Source: Carpediemonas membranifera BICM | Lineage: Eukaryota > Protista > Fornicata | Direction: 5' to 3' | DNA length: 64,000 bases | NCBI GenBank assembly: GCA_019828565.1 | Contig: JAHDYR010000067.1 | Coordinates: 340,244 to 404,243, forward strand | In this document: positions 42,320 to 54,711 of the stretch, piece by piece | Position numbering within the stretch: position 1 is the first letter of the stretch | How the letters are laid out: every line of letters begins with the position of its first letter | The notes under the pieces: generated by a model | The model's database searches: none | What the model was told of the DNA's origin: nothing | Seen by the model: the letters and a program-made list of their open reading frames with translations, nothing else | Translations under genes and position numbers: made by a program

Positions 42320-45300
42320 TCAATGGCCCACGTCCACCTCGAGCTCTATAATCCGCACATTCGCGATACTGTCAGCCGATAGCCCCAGATTCGTCAAGTC
42401 ACACTTCTTGGGACTAACGAGCAGAGCCTGAAGCCCAGCCGACGATATCGACTCGACGAGGTACTTGAGCACAGTCTGTCTGCTCGTCTCGTCGAGGAAA
42501 ACATCCCACTCGTCTACCGTGACGAAGGGCACCTCGACGCTCTTCCAGCCGGTAACGAATAGCGCGTCTGCAAGCAACGACTTCTGGCCGCCTGACAACT
42601 GCTTGGGCTCCAGGGCTTGGACGCCCGCTGACACACCAACGCTGATATCGATCCTGCCCTTGGTAGATTCAGTTGGATGGTGGATCTTGAGATTCGGCTG
42701 GAACGAGCAATTGGTCAGGACTTCGTTAAATCCGTGTACAAACACCCGACTCAGCGTCAGTCGGAGGTTGTCCATGCGTGTCCGATTTGAGTGGTTCTCC
42801 TGCTCGAGGTGCTCGTACCGGCGTCCAAACCGAGCCTGTTCAGCGCGATTGTGCTCGAGCATCGCGTGCTTGGCGTGCATCTCCTTCAAGACGAGCTCGT
42901 ACGGCCGCCCGTGTTCTGCGGTGATCTCGCTGATCCTGGCCTCGAGCTCGGCGATCTTCTTGGCAATATCCGGCGGCTGATCATCCCCTGGGTCCACCCC
43001 CATCGGCGTGTCAGGGTGGTCTCTCGCCGCCTTCGTGCACATCGCCTGGTACTTCCCCTGCTTGATGCCCACCGTCGCCTGTGCTGTGCCCACGTTCGAG
43101 TCGACCCTCGCCAACTCCTGCTGGACTGTGGCCAGTCGATTCTGGAGGCTCCGCTGGGTCCGGATCCACTGCTCTCTCTCGTCCCTGAACGCCCTTACTG
43201 TCTCCTCGACCTGGGCGACCGCTCCCTGGACTCTGGCACAGTCTGCCCTGCGCCGCTTCAACTCATCCTTGCACTCGGCGAGGCGCTCATCCAATAGTTT
43301 CAGCGCCCCTTTCGCGTCCACCAACGCATCCTCCGCCTCGTCATTCTTCCCAATGAGGACGGCAATCTCGTCCTGCAGAGCCTGACGCCGCTCACCCTTC
43401 TTGTACTGATCATACGCCTCCTTGGCAGCGGCGAGCTTCTCCTCCTCCTCCGCGAGTTGCTGCTTGAGCATGCTGTTTTCCGCGGCGAGTTCTGCCATGG
43501 TCGCCTGGGTGCTTTCGATGAAGCCGATCTGATCATGCATCTTGGCCTCAAGCTCCCTGAGTCGGTCTCTATCACGTGTGGCGGCATCCTTCGCCTCTTC
43601 CAGGTCCTTGGCGGACTTCTCGATCTGCTCCTGGGTGCGGAGATCGCCTGGGATGTCCGGGAACCCAACGTTGGCCAGCGGATTCCGAAGAATGCCGCCC
43701 GCCTCGATACGGTACGTCCCCCCTGGGAACGCGGCGATGGTTCTCTTCAGTACAGCGCGGCTTTCGTTCTTGTCCGTCTGAACTCTGCGGATGAAGTGCT
43801 TGGCGTGCTCCTCTGTCTCAAACAGCAGTGTCCGATCGGCCGCGACGAAGTCTATCAGGTAGCATGTGATGGCAGCGTCCTTGACCTCCAGGGCATCGAG
43901 TAGAGTCGCCTGGAATCCGACCACACCGTTGAGTGGCAGGTCGTCGGATCTACACGAGCTGGGGGGCTTGTTAGAGGGGTACGAGTTGAGTGAGATGCCC
44001 GCCTTCTGACGCATGAGCATGTTGTTGAGCGCGTTGAACACGGTGCGGTTGAAGCAGACCGCGTCGACTTTCGTCATCTGCAGGAGCTGACGAACCAGCT
44101 TACTCCTCGCAAAGGCTGGCTTGACTACCAGATACGCCGCTACTGGGGCGACTGGCTTGTACGGCCGGTCCTCGTCCTTCAGCCGGGGCACGATCTTCTC
44201 CCAGCACGCCTCGACGACCTTGAATCGGTTCACGATCTTCGGATCTGCCAGAAGCTGCAGCCTCTCGTTGATATCATTGAGATTTGACCCGCCCTTGTGC
44301 CGCACCTTCCTCAGCCGGGCCTGGGCCGCGTCTGCTGCTGCTAGGGACTTCTCGGCGACCTTCTTCTGCGCCAAAAAGTCCTCTCGCATACGCTCTCTCG
44401 CGGATTCCTGCTTGTCTAGGGCGTGCCGTGTGTTCTCGAGCTCCACGGCCTTCTGAGCGAGCAAGGAGTGTGTCTGGTCACGTTTCAATGAATCCGGTTG
44501 GGGCACCTCCTTGCTTGCGTCCTCCAGGTCGCGCTCCTTTCGCTTCAAATCCCGGCTGAGCGTGTTGATGGTGTGCTTGGCGGCCTCCTTCTTCGCCTGT
44601 GCGTCCATGATGTCCCTATGCGTCTCATCTATGACCCTTTCCTGGTCAAGCACCAATGACTCCGCGGCGCTGACCTGCTCGGCAGCTTCTCGACTCTCTT
44701 CGGCCAGTCTGGCCAGCTTCCTCTCAAACTTAGCGATGCTCGAGCTCGCCTTCTCCACGTCCGTCGCAGTTGTAGCCACGCGTTGTTCCAGATCTGCCTT
44801 GGCCGACGCCGCGTCAACTACAGCCCGCTGGGCCCTCTCGACTTCAGCCCGCTGGTCTCTGAGGCCAATAAACGTCAGCTGGGCGACGTGCCGCTTGATA
44901 CGGGCATGAAGTTCGTCCGACCCCTGCATTGAGTCAACCTCGTGCTGCAGGGCGACGTACTCCTCCTGCATTCGTTCGACTGAGCGGGTAAAGGTGTCTA
45001 GGCAGCCGACTGTGTTTCTCATGTTATCAGCAGTGGCCTCAATAGATCGGCGCACATGTTCGAGCCTCGTAGCCTGCAGGAAGAAGCTGTAGAGCGTGTA
45101 GGGGTCGATATTAGCAACGGTCTTCATCAAATTCTGGTTGATGAACTGAAGTTGGTTGCCGGGGTCGAGGTTAAGGTGCTCCCGTAGAGCCCGGACGGTC
45201 TTGGCTGACACCTTCGTCCCATTGAGAGAGAACGACGTGCTACACGTCCCAGAGGCGTTGAGGCGAAGGTCACGGTGCAGTACAAGTGTGTCACCGTATT

Positions 45301-46942
45301 GGCCGTGGCAGTAGGCGTTGTACCCCGTGTTGACGATGTGCATCGACACGTGCCCGCTCTTCTCACCGTCGGCACGGGCCTGGCGGTTGAAGAAACCTGC
45401 CAGACCCGCCGTGGAGGTTGACTTGTTTGAGTCGTCCGCGATCTGTGCCTCTGTCCCGCCCAGTGCGAATGAGATGCCGCGGCTGATGCTGGAGTTGTGG
45501 GTCACCAGCATGCTCTCGGTGACAATGAAACGGCAGGTCGGGCCCTCCATGGTGAAGCCGTAGTAGTCGTCCTCGGGCTGGGGGGTGACGGTGAAGCCGA
45601 CGGGGGTGGGGTTTTTGTCATCATGTGTGGCCATGTCGGTCTTGTGGACGCGGCAGGGGAGGGCGCCGTGGATCATAAAGCGGGCCGTGGCGTCAGCGCC
45701 GCTCACCTTGAGCGAGAGGCCGAGGGACCGTGCGATGAACTTGATGTCATCACTGAGCTGGCCCTGGGCGTGGGTGATGACGAAGGCGCCACCGTCGAGT
45801 CTGCCGCTGGTGTCGACGAACCCGGCCAGGAGGCTGAGCCGCTGCTGCACGGTGCCGACCTTGATGGCTGGGGGGACGTGCTTGGTGGAGCAGAGGTCGT
45901 TGGCCCGCAGCCATGTCAGGAAGGGGCTGTCGAGGCCGTCGGCCCCGAGGATGTTGTTGGTGTCAGCCTCGCCAGCCGGCACAAGGCGGCAGGCGACCGA
46001 CTTGACCGCCAGCGTGAACCCTTCGACGACGTCGGGATCGGTTGTGGTGAGTTGGGGGACGCCCTCGTGGCCCACGCTTCCAGCGCCGAGCCAAGCACCG
46101 AGGGTCCACTCGAACGAGGGGGTGTCAGTGACGTCCTCGACCACGGCCGGCGGGGCATACGCGGGGAGTGCTGACGTGTCGAACAGCTCGATGCGGGGGG
46201 CGTGGAACATGAAGGCCCGCTCGCGGAGGTTGGGGTGCATGCATTCGTCATCGAGGAAACGTCTGACTGGCATGTCGAGGATGGTGCCGTCGTACAGGAC
46301 GGAGCAGTTCTCGTGCACGGCGTCATGCTGCTCGAGGGTGGCCTTGAATGTCTCAGCGGCGTCAACGTCGGTGAAAGCCACAGATCTGGCTCTGACGGAA
46401 GTGACCTCGTTGGAATCGTCGCGACTGATGAAGACGAACTCTACACGATAGTCGCAGTCCCCTTTGGTCAAAGTGGGTCCAGCACCGCTCATCATGAATG
46501 ATATGACGTGGGACATGTTGCAGGTGAACGCCCCGACCTCCGTCTCGACCCGTGCCATCTCCTCCCGGCCCCGGGTGACCGTCAGGACGCGCTTAGGGGT
46601 CCCCTCGGCGCCCATGATCGTGTCTCCGGCCTGGATGTCCTCGGCGCACTGGAACTGACCGCTGGCCATGAGGACCTTGGTGCCGCGGGCCAGGCACTTG
46701 CCAGCACCGTTACCTCCGTGGAGAAGAGTGAGCTGAGATGATAGATCAAGCTCAAAGGTGCGGAATGTAATCCAGTTCTTGTACACAATCTTCTTAATGC
46801 GGCCGGCGCCTTCAACTGAGCTCGAAAGACGGGGCTGCTCCTCGGAATCGGAGTCTTCCTCCCGGGCTCTCTTCTGTGAAGGCTCATAGCCGTCTTCATC
46901 ATCGCTTTGATACCGCTGGGTCCTCTTTTTAAGTCGGACCAT
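42320..46942 (-). CDS. SMC6: Structural maintenance of chromosomes protein 6, intein-containing precursor (1540 aa; 1139 aa after splicing)
   Basis: Walker A GGNGAGK|SS is restored on intein removal; YSFFLQATRLE; long coiled coils and hinge; signature LSGGQKS; Walker B/D-loop PFVTVDEWDVFLD (SMC6-type DEFDVFMD, not SMC5-type DEINQGMD). Confidence 0.88.
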   Translation of the reverse strand: MVRLKKRTQRYQSDDEDGYEPSQKRAREEDSDSEEQPRLSSSVEGAGRIKKIVYKNWITFRTFELDLSSQLTLLHGGNGAGKCLARGTKVLMASGQFQCAEDIQAGDTIMGAEGTPKRVLTVTRGREEMARVETEVGAFTCNMSHVISFMMSGAGPTLTKGDCDYRVEFVFISRDDSNEVTSVRARSVAFTDVDAAETFKATLEQHDAVHENCSVLYDGTILDMPVRRFLDDECMHPNLRERAFMFHAPRIELFDTSALPAYAPPAVVEDVTDTPSFEWTLGAWLGAGSVGHEGVPQLTTTDPDVVEGFTLAVKSVACRLVPAGEADTNNILGADGLDSPFLTWLRANDLCSTKHVPPAIKVGTVQQRLSLLAGFVDTSGRLDGGAFVITHAQGQLSDDIKFIARSLGLSLKVSGADATARFMIHGALPCRVHKTDMATHDDKNPTPVGFTVTPQPEDDYYGFTMEGPTCRFIVTESMLVTHNSSISRGISFALGGTEAQIADDSNKSTSTAGLAGFFNRQARADGEKSGHVSMHIVNTGYNAYCHGQYGDTLVLHRDLRLNASGTCSTSFSLNGTKVSAKTVRALREHLNLDPGNQLQFINQNLMKTVANIDPYTLYSFFLQATRLEHVRRSIEATADNMRNTVGCLDTFTRSVERMQEEYVALQHEVDSMQGSDELHARIKRHVAQLTFIGLRDQRAEVERAQRAVVDAASAKADLEQRVATTATDVEKASSSIAKFERKLARLAEESREAAEQVSAAESLVLDQERVIDETHRDIMDAQAKKEAAKHTINTLSRDLKRKERDLEDASKEVPQPDSLKRDQTHSLLAQKAVELENTRHALDKQESARERMREDFLAQKKVAEKSLAAADAAQARLRKVRHKGGSNLNDINERLQLLADPKIVNRFKVVEACWEKIVPRLKDEDRPYKPVAPVAAYLVVKPAFARSKLVRQLLQMTKVDAVCFNRTVFNALNNMLMRQKAGISLNSYPSNKPPSSCRSDDLPLNGVVGFQATLLDALEVKDAAITCYLIDFVAADRTLLFETEEHAKHFIRRVQTDKNESRAVLKRTIAAFPGGTYRIEAGGILRNPLANVGFPDIPGDLRTQEQIEKSAKDLEEAKDAATRDRDRLRELEAKMHDQIGFIESTQATMAELAAENSMLKQQLAEEEEKLAAAKEAYDQYKKGERRQALQDEIAVLIGKNDEAEDALVDAKGALKLLDERLAECKDELKRRRADCARVQGAVAQVEETVRAFRDEREQWIRTQRSLQNRLATVQQELARVDSNVGTAQATVGIKQGKYQAMCTKAARDHPDTPMGVDPGDDQPPDIAKKIAELEARISEITAEHGRPYELVLKEMHAKHAMLEHNRAEQARFGRRYEHLEQENHSNRTRMDNLRLTLSRVFVHGFNEVLTNCSFQPNLKIHHPTESTKGRIDISVGVSAGVQALEPKQLSGGQKSLLADALFVTGWKSVEVPFVTVDEWDVFLDETSRQTVLKYLVESISSAGLQALLVSPKKCDLTNLGLSADSIANVRIIELEVDVGH
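45494..46696 (-). mobile_element. Intein (401 aa, VMA1-like Hint domain with degenerate LAGLIDADG homing endonuclease) in the SMC6 Walker A motif
   Basis: Block A CLARGTKVLMASG; block B FTCNMSH; block C LGAWLGAG; block D KHVP; block E LLAGFVDTSG; block H DIKFIARSLG; block F EDDYYGFTM; block G VTHN followed by Ser+1. Confidence 0.95.
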
Positions 46943-47083
46943 GGGCGGGACTCCAGTGCGCCGTCCTTAAAGTGCACTGTATGCGATGTCGGTGAATGTG
47001 GCCTGGCACGACTCGCTAGGCCCAATTGGCGCGCCCCAGCAAGCCTCCAACAGTCGACTTTGTTGAGTCGGCTTGAGGCATCA

Positions 47084-49210
47084 ATGAGCGCCAGCCACGT
47101 TATTGGTGCTACTGCCGGCCCAACAAGGTACCAATGCTGCATTAAGTGGGGCATTTGCAACTATGTGATATACGGAACTACTGCTGCTGTCGCTGTTTGG
47201 AATACTCAGGCCAATTCGATAATACTCGCGAACCACCACCGTGCGCCCGTTCGTCAAGTCGCATGGATGCACGACGAGGCTCAGCATCCTATATCCGAGT
47301 TTGTTTCTGGCGATATCGACGGAAACATCGTCTATTGGGCCCTTAACGAAGGAAAACCCTCGGTTATGGCCGAAATCAAGCTTGCCACGTCCTCTCCCCC
47401 GGCTCAAATGGTTGCAGGAACACACAGCGGCCACCGATTCATCGCCATAGTTCAGGTGAGTGGCGACCTGACCCTCCTCGTCCAGCCCCAGCCAGGTCTC
47501 GGGTTCGAGTCCCACGCGGTCACCCCGCCCAGCACCGCCCGGGCCATGTGCCTCGCTTCACTCAGCGGCAGGCTGCTAGTAGGGGACATGGCGGGCCGAG
47601 TTAGTGTCATTTCCCTCGACACTCTCACTGTCGAGCTGACATTCGGGTCCGTGTCAGCTTGGGTGGCCGACCTCGATGCTACAACCATCCTTTACTCGGC
47701 AGACGGAATCTCAGTCGTTGCTGCAGCTGTGGGCAACACCGTCCAGCTGTGGCAGCTGACCCGCACCACCGCCACTATCCTGCGGACATGCCAGGATGCT
47801 GGCGACATCATCACCTCGGTGGCGTTCAGCAAGTCCGCCGACCACCAATCTGACACACTCCTGGCGGCAGGGTGCGGAGATCGGTCCATATTTATGTACA
47901 CCATGGCCCCCGACCTGACTGCCACCCTCGACTCCAGGCTTGGCGCTTTCGGGGCGAGCACGTTCATCGGTGTCACTGGCGTCTGCTGTGACGCCAACGC
48001 GTGTGCAGGCCAGACGATGGACGGGGCGCTGCTCTTCTACACGAGAGGCAAGGCCGCCGAGTCCATCGAGGAGGAGGGCGAGAACTGGGTTGTCGCGGCA
48101 GCTCCATCGGGTCCAGCGGGGAAGGTGTCGGCCATTTGCCCGGTATCGCAGGACGCGGTACTTGTCGCGTCGCATGACAGAACGGTCCGAATCTTCCATC
48201 GAGGGGCGGTCGTATCTGAGATTGCTCGGCCACTGGTGCACGGTTATCCAGTTGCTGGCGCCACGTATATTTCGGGCCTTTTGCTCGTATGGGCGGGCGA
48301 GACGAGTGTCAGAATTCTCAGACCAACCGAGTCATTCAAAAGAACGGCGAATCTATTTAATATCGACTCAATCTCCGCAGGATACGGCATTGGCGCGGTA
48401 CAGCCCCCCATGCGTCTGCTGAACAAGCCCATGTTCGTAGGCGCCACGCCGTCGTTGTTTGAGCGAGCCCTTCTTGACGACCACCAAGTGACTGAAGTGT
48501 CAGAGTTCAGACCGGGCCTGATCGCCCAAATCGCGGTCGATTCTGATCCTATCCTCGGGATTCCCGCCGATGTATCACACGACGAGGCGCTTCGTCGGAC
48601 ACTGTGGGGGCAGCACGGCGAGGTCCCGACGCATGGCCCCGTGACCGTAGCCGCGGCATGTGTTGGCGATGATGGAGAGGTCATGCTCGCCATGGCCCCG
48701 GAAGCATCGCGGCCGTCTGACTGCGCTGTCGAGGTTGTGAGGCTGGCGTGCCATGGGGATTACATCAGACATGCGCCGTTGGCTACGATGGCCGTGGGCG
48801 AAGTCGTCAGTTCATTGGCGATGGAAGGTGGAACTATCGCTGTTGGGACGGGTACCCGACTCCTCATCTTCCGAAACGGGGCGGAGCAGGTCTTGGCGGT
48901 CGATTCGCCAGTCTCCGCTGTTGCCCTTGAGTCAGGTGCAGTTTATGCTGTATCCGGGCCGACGCTGGTCACCGTTTCCTCAGCGGACGCCGAGCCTGTT
49001 ACCCACTCTCTCGGCAGCAAAGGCGTCTCTCTCTCTGTCTCTGGCCGCACAATTGCTGTGGGGCGGGTCAACGGCACCGTCGCCGTTGCACGCGATGGCA
49101 AACAGACCGACCTTGTTGTGGGCGCCGGCTGTGTCGACCGGGTGGCGCTGTGCGGGGGCCTGCTTGTTTGCGGAGTCGGGTCAGCTGTGGTTTGGGTCGA
49201 GCTCGGATGA
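47084..49210 (+). CDS. ELP2: Elongator complex subunit 2-like WD40 protein (divergent)
   Basis: WD repeats plus ASHDRTVRIF, EIARPLVHGY, AGETSVRIL, GAVQPPMRLLNKP and LRRTLW, matching Elp2 blocks. Confidence 0.72.
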   Translation: MSASHVIGATAGPTRYQCCIKWGICNYVIYGTTAAVAVWNTQANSIILANHHRAPVRQVAWMHDEAQHPISEFVSGDIDGNIVYWALNEGKPSVMAEIKLATSSPPAQMVAGTHSGHRFIAIVQVSGDLTLLVQPQPGLGFESHAVTPPSTARAMCLASLSGRLLVGDMAGRVSVISLDTLTVELTFGSVSAWVADLDATTILYSADGISVVAAAVGNTVQLWQLTRTTATILRTCQDAGDIITSVAFSKSADHQSDTLLAAGCGDRSIFMYTMAPDLTATLDSRLGAFGASTFIGVTGVCCDANACAGQTMDGALLFYTRGKAAESIEEEGENWVVAAAPSGPAGKVSAICPVSQDAVLVASHDRTVRIFHRGAVVSEIARPLVHGYPVAGATYISGLLLVWAGETSVRILRPTESFKRTANLFNIDSISAGYGIGAVQPPMRLLNKPMFVGATPSLFERALLDDHQVTEVSEFRPGLIAQIAVDSDPILGIPADVSHDEALRRTLWGQHGEVPTHGPVTVAAACVGDDGEVMLAMAPEASRPSDCAVEVVRLACHGDYIRHAPLATMAVGEVVSSLAMEGGTIAVGTGTRLLIFRNGAEQVLAVDSPVSAVALESGAVYAVSGPTLVTVSSADAEPVTHSLGSKGVSLSVSGRTIAVGRVNGTVAVARDGKQTDLVVGAGCVDRVALCGGLLVCGVGSAVVWVELG

Positions 49211-49283
49211 GGCGTTCAGAGTGGTGAGAGATATGCTGTAAATGATACGGACGCATCAGACGGTTAGTAAGATGATTTATCCG

Positions 49284-51566
49284 TTAGTACCCGACGACGT
49301 AGGCAAGCAGGGCGCCCATGGTGAAGATTACGAGGCATGCAAACGGCCCCTCGATCGAGCCGCCGATCAGAAGGTCAAGCGGTTTCAAGAACGGCCGACC
49401 TCTGTTGGCGTCCTCCACGCTGAGCGAAGAGATGTTGGGGAAGGACGACACCGGCAGGAGGATGGCGTTGGAGTTGACAAAACTGCACAAAAGAACGGCC
49501 ATAGCGGGGTGGAAATCCTTAGAGATCTCGGCGACGAAGGGAAGCACGATGAGCGCGGCCACGGTGTGGGAGATGACGTTGCCGGCCACAAACATGAGCA
49601 ACCCCGCGAGAATGATGACTAGGAAGCCCGGCATCGAGTGGAGGGTGCTCTGGAAGGGGTCGATGAGGATGTGAAGAAGCTCGGTCTGCTTGATGGCCGC
49701 GCCGAGCACCGAGCCGCCAGCTAGGAGGGTGACGACGTCCCAGGGGAGGTTGACATAGTCCTGCTTGCTGACAAGGCCGAGCCCGAATAAGATAAAGATT
49801 GGCACGAGCGAGATGATGCCAACACGGCCGATGTACTCGCCTGTAAAGGAGGTCGACGCCCAGAGCGCCACTGCAATCACAAGCGCGGCTGCTGTGCCCA
49901 CTACACCTATGATCGACGGCTTGCCCTGCTTGCTGGCCTCATGGACGGCGGCCTCGTCCGTCGGGTCGACGTCTACCATCCGGGGGACGGAGGCCACGTC
50001 TGGGCGATAGAGTAGCATGACGTACGCGTATGAGAAGAGCACGAGGACGATGCTGACGGGCACGGAGACAAGCATGAACCCGACGAAGGTGATCTCTGTG
50101 CCGTAGCCGCTCGTGGCGAGGGCGTCGAGCGCTAGAGCAGACTGGGGCGACGCGATAGGCGTCCCCATGCCCCCAATGTTCGCGCTGAGGCACACGGCCA
50201 TGAGTATGGTTCGGCCGAACTTCGAGGACTCGGGGAGGAGTCGAATCGTGGGGAGAACGAGTGAGATGACCAACATGGGGGCGGCAACGCTGCTGAGCCA
50301 CATCGAGAGGAAGAACGTCAGCGACATGAGCACGAGGATGTAGAGCCAGGGCTTGCCGAGGGAGCAGCGGGCGATGAGACGGGAAATGGGGACATCGATG
50401 TGGTGGCGGCGCAGAGAGGCGTTGAGGGCGAACCCTATAATGACTAAAATGGTGTTATCGCTGACCATGGCCTGGTAGACGCTTGTTGACCCAGATTCAG
50501 CGTTGCTGTCGAATATTTGGAGCAGGACGGCTGTTACAAGAATGAGGATGCTTGTGGCGAACAGGGGAATGGCGCTTGTCGCCCAGAGGATGAGGGAGAG
50601 CACGAGGAGGGCCAGGGCACGCTGGGCGTCCTGCTGGTCGTCGTCGAACGGCAAGGGAAGGAACGGGATGACTCCAGCGACGATGAGGGCGATGGGCAGG
50701 ATGAGCAGGCCCTTCTTGGTCAACCCCACCTGCTCCGCGGGCAGTCTGGCCTGAGCACGGGCGAGGAATGCCTTGAGGCCCTCGTCGAAGGGGTTGTGCC
50801 TGTATGCATGGTGTTTCGCGACTTCTTCGAGGAAGAACGCGGCTACCTGCTCTGAGTCCTCTTCCTCCTCGCCCTCTGACTGCTCTGATGCGATGATAGA
50901 TGCATACAGTGCTGCTGTCTCGTTCAACAGCAGCGGCCCCTGCTCGTCGGTCGCGAACTCCTCAACCTCCAAGATCCTGTGATAAATGGCGTCGGCAGGC
51001 TCGATCGCGACCTCGTACTTCTCAAGCATAGGCGTGGTGACCAGCTTGTCGAACTTCTTGCATATTTTCCGGAACCCCTCCCTGTTCATGTGGCCGTACT
51101 CAATCAAATGATCTGTGTGACACGCAAAGATGAAGAGCTGCGTGCGGAACAGCTCGATCTCCATCTGACTCTCGTCGCCCTGCTTGATTGCCTTGGCATC
51201 CAGCGTGTATTGCTCGAGAGTGTGGTGCATTTCGGCGCAGATCCTTGCATACTCTTTCTTGACCTTCTCTCGCTCGACTTCTACACACCTGGTGAAGTGC
51301 GAGAGGGTGTCCAGCGCCAGTATCTCCACCGGCGGCTGTGTGGGGGCGGCAGGCACAGGGGTTCCGGGCACTGAGTTCGGCAGGGAGGCCGTGGCGAAAT
51401 CAAAGCTCTTGCTTGTGAAAGAACTGCTGCGGCTATGTCTTTTGTGGCCTAATGAAACCTCGATCTCGTGCATAGAGCGCTGGACGAGCTTCTTCAGCTT
51501 CTTGTAGTCAATGTAAGCGTATGAGTTCGATGAGGACGCTACTTGCAGCGACTTGGCGAACTTCAT
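49284..51566 (-). CDS. SPX-domain SLC13-type phosphate transporter (Pho87/90/91-like)
   Basis: MKFAKSL..YIDYKKLKK and N.EGFRKICKKFDK SPX motifs; ANIGGMGTPIASPQ, LPVSSFPN; many TMs. Confidence 0.92.
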   Translation of the reverse strand: MKFAKSLQVASSSNSYAYIDYKKLKKLVQRSMHEIEVSLGHKRHSRSSSFTSKSFDFATASLPNSVPGTPVPAAPTQPPVEILALDTLSHFTRCVEVEREKVKKEYARICAEMHHTLEQYTLDAKAIKQGDESQMEIELFRTQLFIFACHTDHLIEYGHMNREGFRKICKKFDKLVTTPMLEKYEVAIEPADAIYHRILEVEEFATDEQGPLLLNETAALYASIIASEQSEGEEEEDSEQVAAFFLEEVAKHHAYRHNPFDEGLKAFLARAQARLPAEQVGLTKKGLLILPIALIVAGVIPFLPLPFDDDQQDAQRALALLVLSLILWATSAIPLFATSILILVTAVLLQIFDSNAESGSTSVYQAMVSDNTILVIIGFALNASLRRHHIDVPISRLIARCSLGKPWLYILVLMSLTFFLSMWLSSVAAPMLVISLVLPTIRLLPESSKFGRTILMAVCLSANIGGMGTPIASPQSALALDALATSGYGTEITFVGFMLVSVPVSIVLVLFSYAYVMLLYRPDVASVPRMVDVDPTDEAAVHEASKQGKPSIIGVVGTAAALVIAVALWASTSFTGEYIGRVGIISLVPIFILFGLGLVSKQDYVNLPWDVVTLLAGGSVLGAAIKQTELLHILIDPFQSTLHSMPGFLVIILAGLLMFVAGNVISHTVAALIVLPFVAEISKDFHPAMAVLLCSFVNSNAILLPVSSFPNISSLSVEDANRGRPFLKPLDLLIGGSIEGPFACLVIFTMGALLAYVVGY

Positions 51567-51763
51567 GATGAATAGCGATGGATTGTTGCCGAAAGGTGCC
51601 GCTTCGTGGCTTTCGCCGATTCAAGACTCGCGATCAACTCGCTTCGGGGCAGTCGGTCTCGACCTGTCCCAAGATCGGCAATCACGAAATCGCGGGAAAC
51701 ACCTCAATTCAACCAACATACGCTTTAGTGACAGTAATATCATACACAGACCGCCAATGCCCA

Positions 51764-52870
51764 TCAGGCTCGGGCTCCGTCTCTGAGCATCTCCACGTGT
51801 GCCGCAAACATCGCGCACGCAGCCCGATCTCTAAACTTCACATTCAACTCAGCACCGTCTCTCACCACTGCGCTAATGCTCTCTACGACGTCAACGTCAA
51901 CTTCCCATGTGATCCTCGTTGAAGTCCGCTCAGTCCGCGCCACCTCTCGCGGACTCACGGTTATTACGGGCGACGGACTCCGCCCAGACCTCGCAGACCT
52001 GGCCTGGGGGATTTCCCCGGACTCGCCGCCGTCTGGCCCATTGTTACGGCGCCTGGGCGATGACACCGCGGCGGGACTCCGGTTGGCGACGGAGAGACGC
52101 TCGTCGTCGGGGTCGAGCACTATCGTGCTCTGCCGACGCCCATGTCTGGGTGAAACTAGGCTCGGGGGCACCGCGATCTGGGGGATCGCCGGCTCACTCG
52201 GGCGGCGGTTCAAAGCAGCCTCACGCCGCCTGAGCTCTGCTAGCTCTGCAGCCAGTCTCTCCTTGGCCAGCCGGGCCTGTCTGATGGCCGTCGTCTCGGC
52301 CGGGGGGTGGTCTGGGATGCTGAAGTCGATCTCAGACCCCTGCCGGGAGAGGGAGAGCTCGAGGGGCGGGATGCGGCTCGAAAGGGACTCTGGCTTGTTA
52401 CTATTGGGGGTTGCGGCCGTTCTGTCTGTGGTTCCAGGCAGTTTAGCGCTGGACATCTGTGGTTTGTCCGCAAGCTGGCGGGGCGACTGGGCTACACGGC
52501 GAGTGTTGGGTTGCACGGCCACTGCTGTGGCTATGGATGAGGTCTTACGGGGCTCGACTACTGAACTGCGGGTGAGAATGACGGGTGAGACGCTGGGTTC
52601 GCTCGACTCGGCGTGATTCTTCTTCTGCCACTCGGCAAGAAGCTGAGCGGTGGCAAACGGGGTTCGCACGCGTCCACGGTGGTCGGGGGTGGATGCACGC
52701 GAGGATCTGTTTGCTGAACGGGCTCGTATGCCCCCAGAAAAATTGGAGTCTTGAATTCTCTGAGTTAGCGTTGCAAGTGTCGGCGTTGATGGAACGTTTG
52801 TAGGTGTCTTTGGTGTAAAATCGTCATTCGATAGTGAACGTGCCCGAAGAGGACCGAATGCCCGAGACAT
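51764..52870 (-). CDS. Hypothetical Ser/Arg/Pro-rich protein with a short coiled coil
   Basis: Long ORF from the ATG at 52870; low complexity. Confidence 0.55.
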   Translation of the reverse strand: MSRAFGPLRARSLSNDDFTPKTPTNVPSTPTLATLTQRIQDSNFSGGIRARSANRSSRASTPDHRGRVRTPFATAQLLAEWQKKNHAESSEPSVSPVILTRSSVVEPRKTSSIATAVAVQPNTRRVAQSPRQLADKPQMSSAKLPGTTDRTAATPNSNKPESLSSRIPPLELSLSRQGSEIDFSIPDHPPAETTAIRQARLAKERLAAELAELRRREAALNRRPSEPAIPQIAVPPSLVSPRHGRRQSTIVLDPDDERLSVANRSPAAVSSPRRRNNGPDGGESGEIPQARSARSGRSPSPVITVSPREVARTERTSTRITWEVDVDVVESISAVVRDGAELNVKFRDRAACAMFAAHVEMLRDGARA

Positions 52871-53121
52871 TCCCGAAAATCGTTGTCGGAAGCATATACG
52901 TGAACGAATGTAGCTGCATAAATCGAGATGACTCGTCATCTCGGGCGCTCCGAGCCCCTGAAGCGACATACCCAAGAGCAAGGGTTGGACCTGCCGCGTG
53001 CAGCCACACCGTGTGACGACAAGGCCCAGGGTTTTTGCCTACCGCCAGACCAGGAGAGCCTCAAGGCCAGCGCTACAACACGACCACGCCATAATCCGAC
53101 TCCTTTACCGCTAAACCACGA

Positions 53122-54711
53122 TCACCCCTGCTTCCAAGGAGCGATATTCACCTCGGTAAAGCTGCGGACGAGTTTGGCTGAGGGGGGACCACACCCGACG
53201 GTCTCTGCCACGCCGCCCGACAGCTGAGCAACGCCGAAGAACCACTGGTCTGATGGGTGGCGGAAGCAGATGCCCGAGAACGCTGTCGCCTCAAACGGGA
53301 TTTCGAACGAAGAGTCTTCGCAGAATAAGGTCTTTCCTTCAGTGACCCAGACAATCCGGTAATCATCGCAGTAGACGGCCTTCGCCCCCTCTGGGAACTG
53401 GAGCGGTGTGGCTGAGGAGACCTTGTCGTGCGGGACTGCCCGAGGCAGCAGGCCCGACTGGGCGATCGAGTATGGAACCTTGCCTGCAAAAAGAAGCTGG
53501 TGGCCACTGAGGAAGACGTTGAAAGATAAATTCGAACCTATGAGCGCATCAACACTGAAGGGCAGCTCCTCAAAGCCCGTCATCCCATCCGAATGCCCGA
53601 GCCCAAGCCGGCCATTATCGTTGTCTCCGCTGATAATCTGTCGATCGCCCATGGAGAGAATGATCGTCCTTCCCTCATTAATGATGTGATCTGGGACAAA
53701 CCCGGCAGGCGTACTAATAGTGTTGAAAACGCCCTGGCTCTGCCCACGGCCGACGTAACGTCTTCCGCAGGCGCCCGCCATGACTGTGCCGGCTGGGGTG
53801 AGAACCATGACGATGCCGCTTCTAATAGAAACATCAGTCACCATCATGTGCTTCTCCCAGGAGGGCAGGCTGGCCTCGAGCTCGGCGACCTTGGGGCAGG
53901 CGGGGAAGGCGAGGCGGGTTGGGCCAAGCCAACGTTGGGGCGACCCCAGCTGGCTGTATTCATTCTGTCCCCAGCCCCACAAGCCCTTGGGCGTCCTGGC
54001 GATGTGGGTGGGCCCGTCGCTGTTGACCTCGAGGGCCCTTGGCATTCTGGCCCTGGTGAGGGTGGTGTGGTGCTTCGTGTCGAGCATGAAGAGACGGCCC
54101 ATGTATATACGGTGGAAATAGCTGCCGTAGCTATCATTATAGCGGTAAGAGTCACCGTCCTTCTCGGCGACATTCATCGTGAAGAAGAACTTGCGGCAGA
54201 TGAACCAGAGGCACTTGGCCTCGGGAGAAAGAGCATTGCTGATATGTTCATGCATCTCCTTCTTATGCGGACTCGCAGCCTTGGTCTCTTGCAGCAACAC
54301 GTCTGCCAGGTCTGGGTTGGCCCCGCCACCCATGAGACAGGCCCACACCGTGCCCTGGAGCAGGGTGTGCAGGGCGATCGGGAGCTCCTCGCAATCCTCA
54401 AGCTCGACGTTCATGGACAGTGGCGGGCCGTCGGTGAGGATGGAGCGGGCGCGGTCGAGGAGCACTTGCGCGCTTGGAGCGAGAGGGGGGATGTCGGCGA
54501 GCACCTCGCTGATCGTTGCGGCGTGTATTGGAGAATAGCTGATCTCTAGATCGCGATCTGAAGGCACAGTCTCGCCAAACTGCCTCGAGTATGCGTGGCG
54601 AATGAGAGATGGTATGTCCCCGGGTATAGATGAAGTTTCGACAATAGAAAGTCGAAACGCCGCAATAAGCAATGCTTTGACGTCTGTTGGCGAAGAATCT
54701 GCGCCGTCCAT
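53122..54711 (-). CDS. RCC1/BLIP-II-like repeat protein; N-terminal ~123 aa shared with 16114-17586
   Basis: GLWGWGQNEYSQLG and SGDNDNGRLGLGH motifs. Confidence 0.75.
   Translation of the reverse strand: MDGADSSPTDVKALLIAAFRLSIVETSSIPGDIPSLIRHAYSRQFGETVPSDRDLEISYSPIHAATISEVLADIPPLAPSAQVLLDRARSILTDGPPLSMNVELEDCEELPIALHTLLQGTVWACLMGGGANPDLADVLLQETKAASPHKKEMHEHISNALSPEAKCLWFICRKFFFTMNVAEKDGDSYRYNDSYGSYFHRIYMGRLFMLDTKHHTTLTRARMPRALEVNSDGPTHIARTPKGLWGWGQNEYSQLGSPQRWLGPTRLAFPACPKVAELEASLPSWEKHMMVTDVSIRSGIVMVLTPAGTVMAGACGRRYVGRGQSQGVFNTISTPAGFVPDHIINEGRTIILSMGDRQIISGDNDNGRLGLGHSDGMTGFEELPFSVDALIGSNLSFNVFLSGHQLLFAGKVPYSIAQSGLLPRAVPHDKVSSATPLQFPEGAKAVYCDDYRIVWVTEGKTLFCEDSSFEIPFEATAFSGICFRHPSDQWFFGVAQLSGGVAETVGCGPPSAKLVRSFTEVNIAPWKQG

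Follow-up and report, generated by a model that had tools for sequence, protein, structure and literature searches.

It has long been an open question how inteins come to occupy non-allelic sites new to them, and the arguments mostly draw on sequences that are 30% identical. A locus of the fornicate protist Carpediemonas membranifera puts this question in a concrete form. We analysed a 64,000-nt stretch of its genome (the window; positions 340,244 to 404,243 of contig JAHDYR010000067.1, in the long-read assembly GCA_019828565.1), in which the Walker A motif of an SMC6 gene is split by 1203 nt of in-frame sequence. We asked what this insert is, whether it is real, and how it reached SMC6.

The SMC6 gene and its intein

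Judged by its sequence, the host gene is SMC6. We searched its N- and C-exteins apart, as two queries. The N-extein had Smc6 as its best match, aligning to residues 79-115 of yeast Smc6 up to the Walker A lysine (Smc5 matched a thousandfold more weakly), and the C-extein aligned to yeast Smc6 145-1085 (1.7e-16), with strong matches to Smc6 chains only. The gene has the split ABC head, the coiled coils, and the SMC6-type signature and D-loop. Its features in the window, all on the minus strand, are as follows (a hyphen in GK-S marks the insertion point):

42320..46942 (-): SMC6 precursor open reading frame (P0006), intronless, 1540 aa
46697..46942 (-): N-extein, 82 aa, ending at the Walker A Gly-Lys (by alignment to yeast Smc6 79-115)
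45494..46696 (-): class 1 intein, PI-SceI-like, 401 aa, 1203 nt, SMC6 residues 83-483
46481..46696 (-): N-terminal Hint part, with Cys1 and block B Asn60 and His63 (approximate boundary)
46127..46480 (-): extension matching the DNA-recognition region of PI-SceI (approximate, by fold match)
45662..46126 (-): LAGLIDADG endonuclease domain, fold retained, catalytic residues gone (approximate)
46082..46084 (-): block C catalytic position, Ala205 (GCT); Asp in 72 of 84 family members
45806..45808 (-): catalytic position of block E, Ser297 (AGC); here too Asp predominates in the family (72 of 84)
45494..45610 (-): C-terminal Hint part, with block F and the terminal His400-Asn401
45491..45493 (-): Ser+1 (Ser484), Ser of Walker A and presumably the nucleophile in splicing
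42320..45493 (-): C-extein, comprising the remaining head, coiled coils, hinge and C-terminal head
42578..42598 (-): ABC signature motif LSGGQKS of SMC6
42491..42523 (-): SMC6-type Walker B and D-loop (DEWDVFLD)

Without the insert the protein would be of normal size, as an earlier note on this DNA had said (1540 - 401 = 1139 aa, compared to 1114 in yeast). The C. membranifera genome paper lists a single Smc6 and mentions inteins nowhere. The neighbours of SMC6 (window 42320-54711) are ordinary eukaryotic genes–RCC1-like, WD40 and an SPX-CitMHS transporter–and across the window we found no intein besides the one in SMC6. A search for SMC6 orthologues in fornicates returned three distant proteins, with no empty SMC6 allele among them.

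The insert begins at a Cys and closes with His-Asn ahead of Ser484, splitting Walker A after Gly-Lys (GK-S). A search of residues 83-483 against Hint and Hom_end profiles, which the earlier note had suggested as a check, matched Hom_end_hint (5.6e-20, across intein residues 1-400) and Hom_end (9.4e-05), and PI-SceI was the best match in a sequence search of the PDB (2.7e-13). AlphaFold gave a pLDDT of 31 from the single sequence; repeated with an 84-sequence alignment of the family, it gave a model with a pLDDT of 94. This model matches PI-SceI end to end over 377 residues (TM 0.75, Z 32), and both the model and Pfam place a two-motif LAGLIDADG fold in the intein. All 84 family sequences, without exception, have Cys1, the block B His63, His400 and Asn401. 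An in-frame insert in a conserved motif, with the splicing residues and the Hint fold of its class, confirms that the SMC6 insert is a class 1 intein; the claim of the earlier note that an intein lies in the SMC6 Walker A motif thus stands on the Hom_end_hint match, the PI-SceI fold match and the Smc6-matching exteins. The likeness to the yeast VMA1 intein that it had pointed out is real but distant, at 23% identity to a VMA intein. We infer that an intact SMC6 P-loop requires splicing: after translation, Cys1, the block B His, the terminal His-Asn and Ser+1 would excise the intein and restore Walker A.

Related inteins in the same genome and beyond

We searched 1.84 billion proteins with the SMC6 intein. 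The closest matches were full-length inteins of C. membranifera itself, in an RNF213-like ligase (85% amino acid identity) and a kinesin (78-79%), and the third-ranked match was an intein in a dynein from assembly PPCM01 (43%). All three are placed after the Walker A lysine. At the DNA level, the SMC6 intein is 90.2% identical to the RNF213-like copy and 86.6% identical to the kinesin copy (dS 0.20 and 0.24). The three C. membranifera hosts, which we call cluster 1, are unrelated, and their insertion sites have six contiguous flanking bases in common, with 17-18 of 30 bases alike around the site. No other SMC6 host occurs among the 239 inteins that we collected, the nearest relatives being those in the RNF213-like ligase, kinesin and dynein; the SMC6 intein does not behave as an allele-specific homing intein, whose nearest relatives would occupy this site in orthologous genes. 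Because the nearest copies reside in other genes of the same genome, the immediate donor appears to be intragenomic.

In our tree (44 rows, unrooted, with XRCC3 and other long branches left out, and with composition warnings), cluster 1 forms a clade with 100/99 support that is star-shaped, with a short terminal branch for SMC6. Synonymous differences within it are spread evenly along the element, ends included (p = 0.23-0.63). A test for mosaicism in cluster 1 gave p = 5e-5 on all sites, and this signal faded on synonymous sites (runs p = 0.04, max-chi p = 0.12), so we do not claim mosaicism; conversion in cluster 1 is weakly suggested. The RNF213-like (L003) and kinesin (L004) sites have 9 upstream and 8 downstream bases in common, and the RNF213-like site reads GK-TYT, as in a kinesin; this kinesin-like flank may reflect co-conversion from a kinesin donor. 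A preference for the codons GGC AAG before the insertion point (7 of 7 sites, p = 0.03) was set aside, the sites not being independent and 61% of Gly-Lys pairs using GGC AAG.

The same assembly contains a second group of closely related inteins, cluster 2, in SRP receptor alpha, SNF2 and two DEAD-box copies (P0035, P0053 and P0043/P0194; L172, L173 and L008). They are 91-97% identical to each other in amino acid sequence and about 33% identical to cluster 1. Gene conversion has occurred between the DEAD-box and SRP receptor alpha copies. Over their first 60 codons, a saturated 5' end, these two copies differ at 29 synonymous sites, and an identical run of 351 nt follows (max-chi p = 0.003; p = 0.0005); their dS is 0.53 at the Hint ends and 0.03 in the endonuclease. 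Further family members occur in XRCC3 and an AAA ATPase of this assembly.

More widely, 208 of the 239 inteins occupy a GK-T/S site, and their hosts fall into 52 clusters. The inteins of C. membranifera, PPCM01, Dysnectes and metagenomic protists, together with two that retain both catalytic Asp residues, are split from the phage, bacterial and giant-virus rows of the tree with 100/99 support. The two Asp-intact inteins are a virus-like pair, sister to the protist inteins, and the node that places them outside the protist rows has support of only 88/84. One of them (L169:4932-13967) lies in a 3011-aa protein, and its contig also encodes TBP-DnaJ, a histone and several RING proteins, with no capsid gene seen. 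TBP, histone and RING are listed among mirusvirus core functions (PMC12768974), and by its gene content the contig carrying this nearest endonuclease-intact relative appears mirusvirus-like. The arrival from a large DNA virus proposed by the earlier note is therefore plausible for the family further back; as the direct source of the SMC6 intein it does not hold, the nearest copies being 87-90% identical in nucleotide sequence and in the same genome. A direct scan of viral sequences with the SMC6 intein found nothing close, and alignment-based scans of viral, metagenome and prokaryote collections found distant relatives only, apart from PPCM01.

Several of these relatives are in other protists or protist-like sequences. 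In PPCM01 (L005, L101), related inteins occupy dynein heavy chain and eIF5B, both with the block C Asp kept. A kinesin of Dysnectes brevis (P0028) has a Walker A intein that is sister to cluster 2 and not to the C. membranifera kinesin intein. Eukaryote-like metagenome contigs (L006, L007, L170) have related inteins in kinesin (two), Lon and an ABC ATPase, and are possibly from another intein-rich protist.

Catalytic residues, selection and read evidence

Both LAGLIDADG catalytic Asp residues are missing in every C. membranifera copy examined. In the SMC6 intein, blocks C and E have no acidic catalytic residue; the corresponding residues are Thr and Asn in the RNF213-like intein and Ala and Asn in the kinesin intein. 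In PI-SceI, loss of either aspartate abolishes cleavage and leaves binding intact. The DNA-cutting part of the SMC6 intein thus looks dead, and a search for a live endonuclease among ten inteins of this genome found none. The earlier note had picked up neither this loss nor the sibling copies. In the order SMC6, RNF213-like, kinesin, the cluster 1 codons are GCT/ACT/GCT in block C and AGC/AAC/AAC in block E. Since each lies one step apart, a single shared loss before cluster 1 split is the simplest account. The catalytic positions of cluster 2 are also Ala and Asn. We estimated omega as 0.17 (0.07-0.39) for the Hint part and 0.58 (0.37-0.95) for the endonuclease, a contrast that fits a need for splicing but not for cutting. 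On these ratios, the splicing domain is under purifying selection.

The earlier note had proposed that the intein could give conditional control of SMC5/6. If it were a domesticated switch, conditional splicing would regulate the SMC5/6 ATPase. In favour of a switch, the intein interrupts the P-loop of SMC6, probably the sole SMC6 of this genome, it has 10 Cys residues, and some prokaryotic inteins are known to splice conditionally (PMC5784728). The same intein also occupies a kinesin and an E3 ligase in near-identical form, with no feature specific to SMC6, its terminal branch in SMC6 is short, and purifying selection on the Hint part is expected from required splicing alone. Conditional control is unsupported, and we regard a switch as improbable.

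The reads available to us (two runs, apparently of one data set and, we guess, probably RNA) bear on whether the insert might be a repeat misassembly, or might be removed from the RNA as an intron. Their contigs cover most of SMC6, starting just beyond the stop codon, and match the interior of the insert with 0 differences. None of the contigs listed spans a junction of the SMC6 intein; they stop at the intein ends because these ends are repeated elsewhere, and the support for the junctions therefore comes from the assembly and from the insert being exactly in frame. One loose contig end runs into the RNF213-like flank, which independently confirms that sibling's junction. At window 45605-45720, one contig per run omits 114 bases within the intein (with 30 letters on the short side), probably representing a shorter sibling intein. 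The broken short-read contigs and unspanned junctions are what an artefact would produce, but the insert lies in frame exactly at GK-S in a long-read assembly, has no GT-AG ends, and is represented by SMC6-specific interior sequence in the probable RNA runs, among whose contigs no joint skips it. Together with the Hint omega, this makes an artefact of either kind highly improbable.

Routes into SMC6 and known systems

The reading that we prefer is that the SMC6 insert is a selfish, splicing-competent class 1 intein, as its motifs, fold and selection suggest, and that it was copied whole after its nuclease had died. One nuclease-dead lineage would have been copied in a burst into the GK-S/T codons of SMC6, the RNF213-like ligase and kinesin, the donor of the SMC6 copy being another gene of the same genome. 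The break would most likely have been supplied in trans, by a live relative, by a free-standing or viral endonuclease, or by an ordinary replication break, and would have been repaired by host homologous or microhomology-led recombination using an intein-bearing P-loop gene as template. The family itself would have entered earlier, probably from a large DNA virus. C. membranifera is haploid and lacks NHEJ, and retains HR and a-EJ (PMC8516963), a combination that would favour ectopic templates. We put whole-element copying at about an even chance, preferring it over overwriting or active homing because the synonymous differences in cluster 1 are even and its tree is star-like; the second burst, in SRP receptor alpha, SNF2 and DEAD-box genes, also counts in its support.

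Concerted evolution is a rival account, in which SMC6 would have gained an intein long ago from an active endonuclease and ectopic conversion between resident inteins would later have overwritten it with the nuclease-dead sequence of a sibling. No nuclease would be needed for the overwriting, conversion is evident in cluster 2 between the DEAD-box and SRP receptor alpha copies, and cluster 1 has a patchy odd-one-out pattern. Against this, no old diverged end is kept in cluster 1, whose synonymous divergence is even, and the first entry into SMC6 would still require non-allelic homing; we consider this account unlikely, though a serious competitor. A promiscuous active endonuclease might instead have homed ectopically into each site, with each copy then dying independently. 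Such a course would follow the usual homing cycle, inteins of the family are found at GK sites of many hosts that are unrelated, and the block C change from Asp to Ala arose more than once across deeper lineages, but six parallel losses via the same intermediate codons would be needed within a dS of 0.2, and similarity between the target sites reaches only about 60%, so such homing seems to us rather improbable. With whole-element copying as the preferred reading, a more general proposal, which we hold tentatively and at slightly under even chances, is that non-autonomous inteins of Carpediemonas colonise non-homologous Walker A codons without a nuclease of their own, either through the recombination-based repair and replication of the host or with the help of a cutter acting in trans. 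They would also swap sequence between essential genes that are unrelated, and SMC6 would be a recent victim among these.

What this system mainly offers is evidence, from a second metamonad, that inteins with a dead nuclease have recently moved between unrelated genes and exchanged sequence with one another. One genome, that of a haploid protist that can be cultured, has copies 87-97% identical in seven genes, whose products belong to six unrelated types of NTPase, and this allows donors, tracts and timing to be read off directly. If non-autonomous colonisation is true, this genome would be a tractable model for the spread of inteins to new sites. A core repair complex would also depend on protein splicing, and this in an organism for which the absence of ORC and NHEJ has been reported, and inteins that splice from many GK-S/T contexts may serve protein engineering.

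SMC6 is probably a new intein host. Our literature search found no report of an intein in SMC6 or in Carpediemonas, the host table of the Anaeramoeba study (Dataset S1) lying outside this check; the main text of that study names no SMC host and no Carpediemonas (PMC10710043), and an SMC host is likewise absent from the main texts of two surveys, one by Green et al. and one by Novikova et al. As its main text describes, Anaeramoeba has 45-103 inteins in 55 gene families, with transfers between the P-loops of non-homologous proteins (Gallot-Lavallee et al. 2023, PMC10710043). This makes outdated the premise of the earlier note that nuclear intein hosts are few and mostly fungal, and means that P-loop hopping itself has already been described. 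Two things appear to be unreported: a second metamonad rich in inteins, which suggests that Anaeramoeba does not stand alone, and recent exchange between copies whose nuclease is dead; that main text gives no account of conversion between nuclease-dead copies.

Going by the same text, Anaeramoeba resembles C. membranifera in being an anaerobic metamonad with many nuclear inteins, with kinesin, dynein and SNF2 among the hosts, and with viral links. It is a separate lineage, its cluster 1, composed entirely of P-loop inteins, appears to be class 3 whereas the SMC6 intein is class 1, and it appears to be NHEJ-capable whereas Carpediemonas lacks NHEJ. The P-loop inteins of prokaryotes, phages and giant viruses (DnaB-b, RecA, SF2 helicases and Lon; PMC4760082) belong to the same wider family and occupy the same GK-T/S site, but they are 24-35% identical to the SMC6 intein and nearly all retain both Asp residues. 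A Rad50/SbcC-like ATPase (P0060) has two inteins, one in the ABC signature and one in Walker A. The latter is at the site homologous to that in SMC6, so this site in the superfamily is not unique to SMC6, but it is not close to the SMC6 intein (53 bits). The S. cerevisiae VMA1 intein (PI-SceI) shares with the SMC6 intein the class 1 termini, the succession of Hint, DNA-recognition extension and LAGLIDADG domains, and a P-loop site. Unlike PI-SceI, the SMC6 intein, which is about 21-23% identical to it, is sited after the Walker A lysine, lacks both catalytic Asp residues, and has near-copies at non-allelic sites.
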